Positions 14,356 through 17,086 of a DNA stretch of 32,000 nucleotides are shown here, one piece after another (the first letter of the stretch is position 1; each line of letters starts with the position of its first letter). The notes below the pieces were generated by a model. The model was given only the letters and a program-made list of their open reading frames with translations, was not told the DNA's origin and did not search any database. Origin of the DNA: Paramicrosporidium saccamoebae KSL3 (lineage: Eukaryota; Fungi; Cryptomycota); contig MTSL01000168.1 of NCBI GenBank assembly GCA_002794465.1, positions 36,011 to 68,010 on the forward strand, in the 5' to 3' direction. Both the position numbers and the translations under genes were made by a program.

Positions 14356-15195
14356 TTATTTGTTCATAGTGTTGTCTACGTATTGGCGAGCAAGATCCTT
14401 CACATGGTCTACTGTGGCAGCACTGCCAAAATTCTTTTCAAATTCCAAATATCTTTTGAAAAAGAATTTGGCCTTTTTCGAGGATAATTTTGTATGTACG
14501 ATCCGTTCAAAGAGCCGCCTCAACAGCTCCTTATTGGCACTGCCATGGGCTTTTTTGCACAGATTCTCCTCCATTGTCAAATACACTGACCAGATGTCGA
14601 TGCGTTTGGGACTATTGGCAAGGATACCCTCAAAAAGCGTCCTACCCCGTTCCACCGATGCAGTGCGATATTCTAGTTGTGCAAACTTCATGGTCGTCTT
14701 TTCGTGCTTCCGCTTTGGAAGCACTTTGAGTGAGGCTGCTAGTAGTTTTCGGGCCGCACCAACATCTCGTTCATATAGATACTCGGCATATGCCAGCCAC
14801 ACCTTGCAGCTCTGTCCAAACTTTTTCACGAGCGTCTGGTATGTCTCTATCGTCTCTTCCTGTTTCCCACTTCCGGCATACATCTTTGCCAGCTGCATCC
14901 ACATGGTCCTGGGTTCACAGTACACCACACTCCGGGCAAAGACGCCTTTGAGGGTCTCGGGAGTGCCGTAGAGATGTTCCATGTTGAGAAAGGCGAGCCA
15001 GATGTTGAGCTTTTCAGATTCCTGGCGGAAGGAGATGGTGGTGAGAGCGCGTTCGGCGATGGTGCGCGCCGTAGCCAGGTCTACCAGTTTGAGGATGGTA
15101 GACATGTATTTGATCCAGAGGAGCGACGAGTTGGGCGAGCCTATCAGACGCTTTTCAAATTCTTCAATGACCTGTTCGGGCGAGGTAGCAGTCAT
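14356..15195 (-). CDS. RRP5: RRP5 C-terminal HAT/TPR-repeat module as a stand-alone ORF, 279 aa
   Basis: EEFEKRLIGSPNSSLLWIKYM, ARTIAERALTTISFRQESEKLNIW, ERGRTLFEGILANSPKRIDIWSVY, KKAKFFFKRYLEFE; first ATG at 15195. Confidence 0.92.
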   Translation of the reverse strand: MTATSPEQVIEEFEKRLIGSPNSSLLWIKYMSTILKLVDLATARTIAERALTTISFRQESEKLNIWLAFLNMEHLYGTPETLKGVFARSVVYCEPRTMWMQLAKMYAGSGKQEETIETYQTLVKKFGQSCKVWLAYAEYLYERDVGAARKLLAASLKVLPKRKHEKTTMKFAQLEYRTASVERGRTLFEGILANSPKRIDIWSVYLTMEENLCKKAHGSANKELLRRLFERIVHTKLSSKKAKFFFKRYLEFEKNFGSAATVDHVKDLARQYVDNTMNK

Positions 15196-15235
15196 GTTCA
15201 GAATGACCAGGGCATAGAAAGATGGATGGTAAGCC

Positions 15236-15306
15236 AATATGTTAATATGTTAATATGCCGACATGTCGATACGTGGGTACGTGGGTACGATAAGAGTCTA
15301 AGAGTC
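15236..15306. repeat. cluster of three different 8-bp tandem duplications
   Basis: (AATATGTT)x2.75 at 15236-57, (TACGTGGG)x2.5 at 15270-89, (TAAGAGTC)x2 at 15291-306; palindrome CGACATGTCG at 15259-68. Confidence 0.9.
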
Positions 15307-15370
15307 AGCCTAGCGCCCATGTAGTGTGGATAAACAGATGCTCCTGGTTGGCTATATACTAAATCTCAAT

Positions 15371-17086
15371 TTAATTGACTGTAACTAAATCATCTAGAGT
15401 AATCTTGCTCTTTTTGCTAGCCCTCTCTCCCTCATTGGGCTTGGATCCCTCCGGTCTCGACTTTGGGCCCGTCCGTTTCCGCAGCGACAAGGTCAACTCT
15501 TTGGCGTTGGCGTCACCCTTGACAATGCGACACCTCACCACCTGTCCCACAAAGAAAGAATCTTGCGGATGATCGACATACTCGTCCGTCATCTCTGCCA
15601 CTGTCACAATTCCCTTCACTTCGCCATAGAAGCGCACAATACACCCGAAATTACGAATAGCAACAATGTATCCATCATGAGAGTTGCCTGGGACCAGCTG
15701 CAAATAGTCTGTAAAGACGGGAAGGGTAGAATCAAGAAGACCCTTTTTCCGAGTAAGAGTGATGCGGCGCGTCTTGGGATCGCAATCAACCACACGGAAT
15801 TTGTACTTTTGGCCAACATGATAGGACTTTAGAGCTTGATCAGTCTGAACTTCGGTTAGATGGAACTTGGGACAGATGGCACGGATTCTGTCTGTTATCG
15901 AAACTACCACTCCAAAGGCCTCCACCTTGAGGATCTGTCCACGGACAATCTGGCCGGGATGGACGTCTTCGATGCGAAGAATGCTCTCCTTCAAGATGGA
16001 TGGCTGCAGGGAGGCCTGGTAGATCCCACTAAAGGCGTCAAAATCGATGAGGCGGGTCAAATGACGGGAGCCAACTTTGTAGGCACCCTCAATCTTTTCC
16101 ACATGCTCATCTGACAGTCTCGAAATGTGTGCATAGGCAAATTTTTCATCTCCAAGTGACAATGCCACACCCAATCCCACGTCGATGCGGTACACGGTGG
16201 CGCCTTCAACCCTCTCACCAATGCGCTCCGTTTGCATCTCGCACTTCCATCCAACAATATTGGTTTTAGCAGAAAGCAAAAATTTCTTCTCCTCCACATC
16301 GACGTGCATAATCCGGGCCGTAATCTTTTTGCCGACAGGGAAATGTTCAGCCAAATCAAGATCCTTGTGACGACGCATCATGACCGTATCGGGGAGGTTC
16401 AAAACGTCAATCTTTCCCTCATGGCCTGAAAAGGACACTGTCAGATGGCTGTTCTTGATTGCCTTGACTTCGGCCTGCACCATGGTGCCACATCTGAGAC
16501 TGCATACGTTTGCCTTTGTTTGGAAAATGGACTCTGCAATCGTCTTGGTGTCTAAAGAGAGGGTTATTACACGGTTTGCACGGTTCTGGAATGAAGAAGT
16601 GACGATGCAGGTCACAGTCTTGCCGACACTCAACGGACTGATAGTGTTGGCGTCAGGAAGAAATCCAACCATTCCACCTGTCCCAAAGGAGACAGTGTAT
16701 CCACGATCCTCATGACTGCAAACCTCTCCCACTACTATTATACCCTCCACAAAGGAGTCATCCTCGATTCCCTTATTCACCGTCTCGGGTATCAGAGACA
16801 GCTCCAACCTCCTCTTAGTCCCGCCCTTCTTGGGAGACTCTACTGCTACAATACTTGCCACCACCAGCTCACCCACCTGATACATCGACGTGAGTGACGG
16901 TATCTCGGTGGCCGTCTCGATAGAGGCGAGGGCGGCAGTCAGACTGGGCGAGATTCGATCGCAAGTGACAAATCCAGTGAGTTGGTTAGGCAGGGAGATG
17001 CACATGTCCAGGTCGTTGACGGCCTTTACTACGCCCAGCACCTGTTGGCCCACCTTGAGCTTTGAAAAGTTTAAGAATCCAGACAT
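15371..17086 (-). CDS. RRP5: RRP5 N-terminal S1-repeat module (six S1 domains) as a stand-alone ORF, about 571 aa
   Basis: Six S1-like units, e.g. KVGQQVLGVVKAV…ISLPNQLTGFV, AYAHISRLSD…YKVGSRH, FGCIVRFYGEVKGIV…DSFFVGQVVRCRI. A small upstream exon cannot be excluded. Confidence 0.88.
   Translation of the reverse strand: MSGFLNFSKLKVGQQVLGVVKAVNDLDMCISLPNQLTGFVTCDRISPSLTAALASIETATEIPSLTSMYQVGELVVASIVAVESPKKGGTKRRLELSLIPETVNKGIEDDSFVEGIIVVGEVCSHEDRGYTVSFGTGGMVGFLPDANTISPLSVGKTVTCIVTSSFQNRANRVITLSLDTKTIAESIFQTKANVCSLRCGTMVQAEVKAIKNSHLTVSFSGHEGKIDVLNLPDTVMMRRHKDLDLAEHFPVGKKITARIMHVDVEEKKFLLSAKTNIVGWKCEMQTERIGERVEGATVYRIDVGLGVALSLGDEKFAYAHISRLSDEHVEKIEGAYKVGSRHLTRLIDFDAFSGIYQASLQPSILKESILRIEDVHPGQIVRGQILKVEAFGVVVSITDRIRAICPKFHLTEVQTDQALKSYHVGQKYKFRVVDCDPKTRRITLTRKKGLLDSTLPVFTDYLQLVPGNSHDGYIVAIRNFGCIVRFYGEVKGIVTVAEMTDEYVDHPQDSFFVGQVVRCRIVKGDANAKELTLSLRKRTGPKSRPEGSKPNEGERASKKSKITLDDLVTVN

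Follow-up and report, generated by a model that had tools for sequence, protein, structure and literature searches.

The gene for the ribosome assembly factor Rrp5 has very probably undergone a true natural fission in the lineage of Paramicrosporidium saccamoebae and its environmental relatives. In the 32,000-nucleotide (nt) stretch of DNA analyzed here (the window, part of contig MTSL01000168.1 of assembly GCA_002794465.1), the S1 array and the TPR/HAT domain of Rrp5 sit on two open reading frames (ORFs) and not on one polypeptide. A gene fission had been proposed in an initial annotation of this DNA, and the proposal is borne out by the presence of the same split in at least six diverged genomes, by conserved stop and start positions, by purifying selection on both ORFs, by the lack of a splice acceptor in the closest relative, and by the existence of fused sister forms. 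Rrp5 belongs to the very small set of factors that both ribosomal subunits require; its C-terminal part is needed for processing of precursor ribosomal RNA (pre-rRNA) at sites A0-A2 and its N-terminal part for processing at A3. P. saccamoebae itself is an intranuclear parasite of amoebae and a relative of Microsporidia (PMC5701793).

The two ORFs both lie on the minus strand, in different reading frames, and their separation by 175 nt, as first described, proved exact, with no N in the gap. Likewise, the TAA stop of the upstream ORF is indeed overlapped by ATTAAA, and the downstream ORF does have its own ATG and an in-frame stop shortly upstream of it. The elements of the locus, in window coordinates and with protein lengths in amino acids (aa), are as follows:

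17086..15371, minus strand: RRP5-N (S1-only) gene, 571 aa, with an ATG start and a TAA stop at 15373-15371
aa ~15-97, 117-177, 202-272, 292-359, 380-445 and 469-534 of the 571-aa protein: S1/OB repeats, followed by a 36-aa disordered basic tail
15400..15383, minus strand: codons for TLDDLV, a conserved C-terminal motif (aa 563-568), with the stop three codons later
15385..15172, minus strand: candidate GT..AG intron of 214 nt (..TLDDL/VIEEFE..), rejected
15375..15370, minus strand: ATTAAA hexamer over the S1 stop codon, a likely poly(A) signal, which would belong to an S1 mRNA separate from HAT
15370..15196, minus strand: intergenic spacer of 175 nt, free of N, with stops in all three frames
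15252-15250, minus strand: TAA closing the HAT frame, 54 nt upstream of the HAT ATG
15195..14356, minus strand: RRP5-C (HAT/TPR) gene, 279 aa, with its own ATG (MTATSPEQVIEEFEKRL...) and a TAA at 14358-14356
14360..14355, minus strand: AATAAA hexamer over the HAT stop codon; the HAT stop of the closest relative, L050, is arranged alike

We identified the two proteins by profile search, alignment and structure prediction. In Pfam, the S1 ORF matched S1_RRP5 (1.8e-37) and OB_RRP5_4th (6.7e-18) and also OB_RRP5 and S1. HMMER aligned it in one collinear stretch to residues 132-702 of Chaetomium Rrp5 and 111-672 of yeast Rrp5, which comprise S1 repeats 1-6, and gave only secondary matches between the ORF and yeast repeat 7, which starts at about residue 689. 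An AlphaFold model of the S1 protein, built with 11 homologues and having a mean predicted local distance difference test score (pLDDT) of 74.8, contained 30 strands that make up six five-stranded barrels, and a short helix was predicted at aa 565-568. Pfam, the collinear alignment and the six predicted barrels therefore agree on the six S1 domains originally assigned to the upstream ORF. The 279-aa ORF matched the Pfam HAT families and aligned end to end with the TPR/HAT domain of yeast Rrp5 (residues 1457-1720, E = 4e-67), at about 47% identity as read by eye from the alignment; against the Protein Data Bank (PDB) entries 5WWM, 5NLG, 5C9S and 5WLC, E was about 1e-67 to 1e-68. The concave-face residues of Rrp5 (PNSS..W and FR.E.EK.N.W), which form a patch described in PMC6168700, are invariant in the HAT-only proteins.

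Yeast Rrp5 and human PDCD11 contain 12 S1 repeats and a C-terminal TPR/HAT domain, and the S1 ORF of the window is collinear with repeats 1-6 of these proteins. Repeats 7-12, which amount to about 700 aa in yeast, are absent from both ORFs. Thus, six of the 12 repeats of yeast remain, and the loss of about half of the S1 repeats suspected at the outset holds. Yeast Rrp5 is one gene that includes S1 7-12, whereas the window has two genes that lack S1-7 and S1 10-12.

The deposited gene models contain the 571-aa S1-only protein and fuse the HAT ORF to the downstream gene for the mitochondrial processing peptidase (MPP, family M16), giving a model of 732 aa. As these models fuse neighboring genes, they are untrustworthy either way on the question of a split, and we therefore compared genomes. 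When the HAT ORF was searched at the protein level, about 20 environmental homologues with 56-78% identity came up, most of them 278-312 aa long, and we read the contigs of six lineages (L050; L002/L003; L051/L052; L053; L004-L006; and L007, which is GCA_047514055.1 / JBCAWG01). In all six, an S1-only ORF (557-697 aa) was located directly upstream, and on the same strand, of a HAT-only ORF (278-301 aa), with HAT identity to the window ranging from 78 to 60% across these split genomes. Synteny in relatives, named in advance as a check, thus revealed the same two-ORF order in at least six other deeply diverged genomes. Because both ORFs have strong, specific homology and are kept in many genomes, the arrangement is not a chance observation. 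The spacers between S1 and HAT in the relatives measured 140, 258, 288, 391, 473 and 817 nt, could not be aligned, and contained stops in all frames; furthermore, the frame of S1 relative to HAT differed among the split loci. The spacers include simple repeats, such as a tandem (CAAAGAGAGGC)n at 5743-5870 of L007 and a 16-nt G run at ~5440-5470 of L004, which are typical of unconstrained intergenic DNA.

In contrast to the spacers, the two ORFs are constrained. Between the window and L050, nonsynonymous divergence (pN) of the S1 ORF was 0.19 and synonymous divergence (pS) was 0.79, which is saturated; for the HAT ORF the values were 0.14 and 0.78, and overall pN of both ORFs was 0.14-0.28 against a pS of about 0.78. 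A pN so far below a saturated pS shows that both ORFs are under purifying selection. Moreover, since synonymous sites are saturated, positional features that the lineages share have been kept by selection and do not reflect recent ancestry. Such features occur to either side of the spacer. In eight lineages (the window, L050, L002, L051, L053, L004, P0103 and P0106) the S1 stop codon lies 2-5 codons past a TLDDLV-type motif, the fuller form of which is K-K-x-T-L-D-D-L-V. A stop within five codons is expected by chance at ~0.21 per lineage, which gives ~4e-6 over the eight if the lineages are independent; were TLDDLV instead the end of an exon, the first in-frame stop would be expected at a random distance from it. 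On the other side, the HAT ATG lies 4-11 codons before a conserved PE..EEFEKRL in 7/7 loci read as DNA, often as Met-Thr, where chance expectation is ~0.17 per locus. The 17 close HAT homologues (278-312 aa) likewise start 4-11 codons, in a few cases more, before PE..EEFEKRL, and the HAT frame in the relatives is closed 30-135 nt upstream of the ATG.

These comparisons also bear on the possibility that the split is an artefact or a sign of decay, i.e. an error or frameshift in the P. saccamoebae assembly or a dying RRP5 pseudogene. This assembly is a draft, and annotation of the region is unreliable, with HAT fused to the M16 peptidase and two paralogous genes fused elsewhere. However, six assemblies made independently from different samples have the same architecture, both ORFs are unbroken in every case and show a pN far below saturated pS, and the spacer in the window is free of N and has stops in all frames, such that no single-indel repair could join the ORFs. 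We therefore regard error or decay as exceedingly improbable.

The surroundings of the locus vary among lineages. The order Vps53(-)/S1/HAT/MPP/CAP(-)/SulP is kept in four of them (the window, L004, L051 and L053); in L002, Vps53 is found downstream of HAT and the M16 peptidase gene far upstream, yet S1 and HAT are together. L056/L057, whose S1 identity to the window is 41%, carry a 664-aa S1-only gene followed by a convergent DAP3-like gene, and no HAT-coding DNA was detected within ~7 kilobases on either side of this S1 gene, even at E <= 10. A possible HAT partner for it, P0076, was discarded: it is of the 'YLDQEI' type, belongs to another eukaryote and does not map to the L056 contig. Another sequence, P0060 (354 aa, from a 282-kilobase Logan/ENA contig), is a divergent HAT-only ORF with 36% identity and the clade-typical LTLEENR; its N-terminus, MPSLRELE, resembles the linker of fused forms, and it could be a HAT partner where the two genes are no longer adjacent. 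We also considered L054 (1344 nt, with a complete HAT ORF) as a transcript and rejected it, as it has repeats downstream and lacks a poly(A) tail; it is genomic and uninformative.

Several points weigh against a fission into two independent genes. That there are separate mRNAs and separate proteins is something we infer from sequence only. Most of the relatives are metagenome or Logan contigs with prokaryote-style ORF calls, and their start codons are predicted. Two word-prefiltered protein searches found no second Rrp5-type S1 protein in P. saccamoebae, which is a weak negative. In addition, S1 and HAT are adjacent in seven genomes despite the rearranged neighbors in L002, which could hint at co-transcription or some other coupling. 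Finally, 15385..15172 is a GT..AG join that is in frame, and it is the sole such join near the motif in the window.

This last point would be explained if RRP5 were still one gene, with a spliceosomal intron of 140-850 nt in the linker and an mRNA encoding a fused protein of six S1 domains and HAT. We listed every in-frame GT/GC..AG join from the last 25 S1 codons to the start of the HAT domain. The initial annotation had foreseen a join of ~210 nt giving ..DDL/VIEEF.., and this join exists, in frame and 214 nt long. It had also stated that no acceptor would allow an intron of ~30 nt, and this was confirmed: there is only one AG between the TAA at 15252-15250 and EEFEKRL, which makes such an intron impossible. 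An in-frame GT..AG pair is present in the window and in 5/6 relatives, the GT always stands right after the conserved ..DDL motif, and S1 and HAT adjoin on the same strand in seven genomes, all of which would fit such an intron. However, the GT is merely part of a conserved Val codon. In the window the donor GTTACA is this codon, elsewhere the only 'donors' likewise begin with Val codons (GTTACA, GTAGCA, GTAACT, GTGGCC, GTGGGC) and have nothing in common beyond GT, and in L053, where the Val position is occupied by an Ile codon (ATC), the GT is shifted. Use of the acceptor in the window would furthermore delete SPEQ, which aligns with its yeast homologue APES, and we rejected the 214-nt candidate for these reasons.

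The closest relative is more restrictive still: L050 lacks an AG anywhere from the upstream in-frame stop to EEFE, and hence any acceptor with which the halves could be joined. Across loci, the candidate joins showed no common 5' splice-site or branch consensus. The sole intron verified in the window lies in the gene for GatB (mitochondrial Glu-tRNA amidotransferase B) at 2146..2114 on the minus strand, is 33 nt long, and has a CTAAT branch, the sequence GTACATGA...TGACTAAT...TTGTAG (GTACAT...TGACTAAT...TAG) and two in-frame stops inside; after its removal the GatB_Yqey domain spans the junction. A stop 2-5 codons past the motif in eight lineages and an ATG just before HAT would both be unexpected around an intron, the S1 gene of L056 has no HAT nearby, and both the window and L050 have a poly(A)-type hexamer on the S1 stop. 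Thus, a spliced mRNA joining the halves is made unlikely, and we consider a single intron-containing gene very unlikely to be the explanation.

We then examined the sequence around the stop codons in the window. A[AT]TAAA was found within -7..+30 of the stop in 8/17 genes, compared to 2.1% of random 38-nt windows. The hexamer stands over the stop at the same offset (-4) in both genes of the locus, as ATTAAA in S1 and as AATAAA in HAT, and this offset recurs at both stops of L050, despite the saturated divergence. Overall, hexamers were observed at the stops of CAP (12665), MPP (12679), SulP (9493), eIF3a (30009), S1 (15371), HAT (14356), Vps53 and the paralogue at 21339-22850. CAP and MPP are convergent, with ends separated by 13 nt, and a common palindromic TAAATGAATTTAT / ATAAATTCATTTA serves as the hexamer for each strand. 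It had been remarked earlier that TAAATTGAG, found after the S1 stop, also follows the stop of KGD1. This is the case, and we tested the 9-mer as a general 3' motif and rejected it, because it follows only 2/17 window genes (S1 and KGD1); A[AT]TAAA is the real recurrent signal. The 175-nt spacer is of ordinary size, given that genes elsewhere in the window lie 13-300 nt apart.

A further alternative is that the ORFs are separate and their expression is coupled, either on a bicistronic transcript or through trans-splicing, recoding or re-initiation. Adjacency kept in L002, where the flanking synteny has changed and Vps53 has moved downstream, fits this, as do the short spacers of some species (140-175 nt). 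On the other hand, several stops in all frames together with a varying offset mean that readthrough or frameshifting cannot fuse the ORFs, spacers reach 817 nt, a poly(A)-type hexamer covers the S1 stop, L056 has no adjacent HAT gene, and unrelated neighbors in this genome are equally close (13-300 nt). Coupled expression of this kind therefore seems to us to have little chance of being correct.

Evidence for how the fission came about is provided by relatives in which S1 and HAT are still fused. P0112-P0126 (806-971 aa) and L009 (1125 aa) carry six S1 repeats and HAT in one continuous ORF, and L055 and L058 are also fused single ORFs with six S1 repeats and HAT. The short fused proteins P0112-P0126 and L009 share with the window the same six S1 domains, the LSLRK.(T/S)GPK end of S1-6 and a HAT domain with YLTMEEN, at 38-45% identity in S1 and 51-57% in HAT. 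The linkers of the fused forms are 92-150 aa long. In P0112, P0114 and P0115 the linker contains the TLDDLV motif known from the window, as (E)xTLDD(L/F)V, 26-45 residues before EEFE. Unlike in the window, no stop follows TLDDLV in these single ORFs, and 26-45 more linker residues lead into HAT. As TLDDLV is internal in the fused forms, it is an ancestral linker motif, and the break lies between this motif and the first HAT helix. In P0112, a Met also stands ~8 residues ahead of EEFE, close to the point at which the split HAT genes begin.

A metagenome scan with a HAT profile yielded mostly distant eukaryotes with long or intron-rich RRP5, which were used as outgroups, and gave L009. In the outgroup contigs L013 and L033, Rrp5 is long and has further S1 repeats. 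We built a neighbor-joining tree, a distance method, from 522 columns of the S1 1-6 region, counting support as bipartitions in unrooted replicate trees. In this tree, the 13 split or S1-only sequences were monophyletic in 93% of 300 bootstraps, and their clade sat within the short fused forms. The fission thus apparently happened once. The loss of S1 7-12 preceded it, given that there are fused forms whose S1 repeats number six; the most economical order of events would start from an Rrp5 with 12 S1 repeats and HAT, from which S1 7-12 were first deleted and which then underwent a single fission. A Rozella allomycis protein, P0034 (347 aa, from a 2288-nt contig), has a HAT model annotated as 'protein prenylyltransferase'. 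It starts with a GFDW-type motif (ILDYQFNWDV) and an acidic linker, and looks like the C-terminal piece of a long Rrp5 cut by the short contig, rather than a product of fission.

We propose the following course for the fission. The ancestor, one of the Paramicrosporidium-like Rozellomycota, would have encoded S1 1-6, a linker of ~90-150 aa and HAT/TPR in one ORF, with S1 7-12 already deleted. In the lineage to Paramicrosporidium, the linker would have gained a stop codon just past TLDDLV, and an ATG a few codons before the first HAT helix, near where fused relatives have a Met, would have come into use. The DNA between the new stop and the new start would then have decayed to ordinary intergenic spacer, leaving two predicted products, a 571-aa RNA-binding protein of six S1 domains and a 279-aa HAT/TPR protein.

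The natural split can be compared with splits made in the laboratory. Yeast Rrp5 has reportedly been engineered into split forms by Torchet (1998), Eppens (1999), Young & Karbstein (2011) and Khoshnevis (2019). In such strains, the loss of Rrp5 is complemented by its N- and C-terminal fragments, each made from a gene of its own, which resembles the two-gene state of the window. Splits at S1 4/5, 5/6, 6/7, 7/8 and 9/10 complement in trans, and yeast that has S1-9 and the TPR domain alone (delta 10-12) survives, with A2 cleavage reduced (PMC6800521, PMC6168700). However, the natural break differs from the engineered ones in that it falls directly before TPR/HAT and leaves a C-terminal half without any S1 domain, and in that it goes together with the absence of S1 7-12, a pairing for which the literature covered reports no test. 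Furthermore, it arose in evolution and persists across a clade. The early suggestion of a natural fission with a half-lost S1 array is upheld, whereas the position of the break, before HAT, does not correspond to the S1-9/S1-10 boundary of the classical yeast trans-complementation. That the split marks an intermediate in a reduction of ribosome biogenesis, as was also suggested early on, is speculative. We found no paper on a natural split or a six-repeat Rrp5 in the literature covered, which was limited, so that this absence is not proof. The split, shortened Rrp5 is best regarded as a natural, newly recognized form of a well-known factor.

If yeast is a guide, the place of the HAT protein would be in the small-subunit processome, beside Utp22/Rrp7 and helix 24; we assign it to the Utp22/Rrp7 site because it has kept the conserved residues of its surface. 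For the S1 protein, the expected targets would be pre-rRNA around internal transcribed spacer 1 (ITS1) and the early 60S precursor, and the halves would act in trans, like the engineered yeast fragments. This division of labor, like any physical contact between the halves, is inferred. In yeast, the inhibitory element S1-7 binds Noc1/Noc2 and takes part in an A2 checkpoint, S1 10-12 bind between A2 and A3, and in current models the middle and distal S1 domains form a checkpoint that links 40S and 60S assembly (PMC6800521). With S1 7-12, the A2-linked checkpoint module would have gone. A more far-reaching idea, which we regard as doubtful, is that fission and S1 7-12 loss together uncoupled the 40S-side HAT/TPR domain from S1 1-6 on the ITS1/60S side, that the A2-60S checkpoint (S1-7 with Noc1/Noc2, and S1 10-12) is gone, and that TLDDLV is a short linear motif by which the S1 protein is tethered anew, be it to the HAT protein or to a partner of both. 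If uncoupling were true, this lineage could serve as a natural experiment that tells whether the assembly of the small and large subunits can do without a covalent link.

Docking of the TLDDLV tail on the HAT protein is unsupported. In crystals of the yeast protein, the 'GFDW' helix (residues 1408-1418) docks on the concave TPR face (PMC6168700). We considered TLDDLV as a homologue of this helix and found no support for it: hhalign placed TLDDLV on 'VEDLTxxL / EIKIDRTGDL', which is nearer to HAT. A phmmer search against the PDB gave no extension of the match into the linker, and AlphaFold predicted for the fused P0112 a short helix at LDDLV with a pLDDT of ~25 and no confident docking.

A clade sister to or near Microsporidia thus lives with S1 1-6 and a separate TPR/HAT protein, which shows that the other parts are dispensable in nature. 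The split genes offer a natural minimal Rrp5 for structural and complementation work, and they place the steps of reduction in order, with deletion first and fission second. In Microsporidia, word-prefiltered protein searches found no S1-repeat proteins, a weak negative.

The analysis also corrects the public annotation, in that the HAT gene is separate from the mitochondrial processing peptidase gene. Two deposited models in the window fuse neighboring genes and look like artefacts of gene prediction in a very compact genome:

window 12679-15195, minus strand (L001 11892-14408): HAT and M16 peptidase as one fused model
window 21438-24519, plus strand (L001 2568-5649): two adjacent paralogues of ~500 aa fused as one model of 953 aa

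The second of these falls within a tandem array, at window 19774-28062 on the plus strand, that consists of five paralogous ORFs with lengths of 499-510 aa:

19774-21297, plus strand: paralogue ORF
21339-22850, plus strand: paralogue ORF
23020-24519, plus strand: paralogue ORF
24773-26296, plus strand: paralogue ORF
26530-28062, plus strand: paralogue ORF

Three of the paralogues were tested against Pfam, and none of these three had a match. The N-termini of the array proteins are hydrophobic and signal-peptide-like, and the array may represent a lineage-specific secreted family. Similar genes of 507-517 aa, also lacking a Pfam match, flank the locus in L051/L052.

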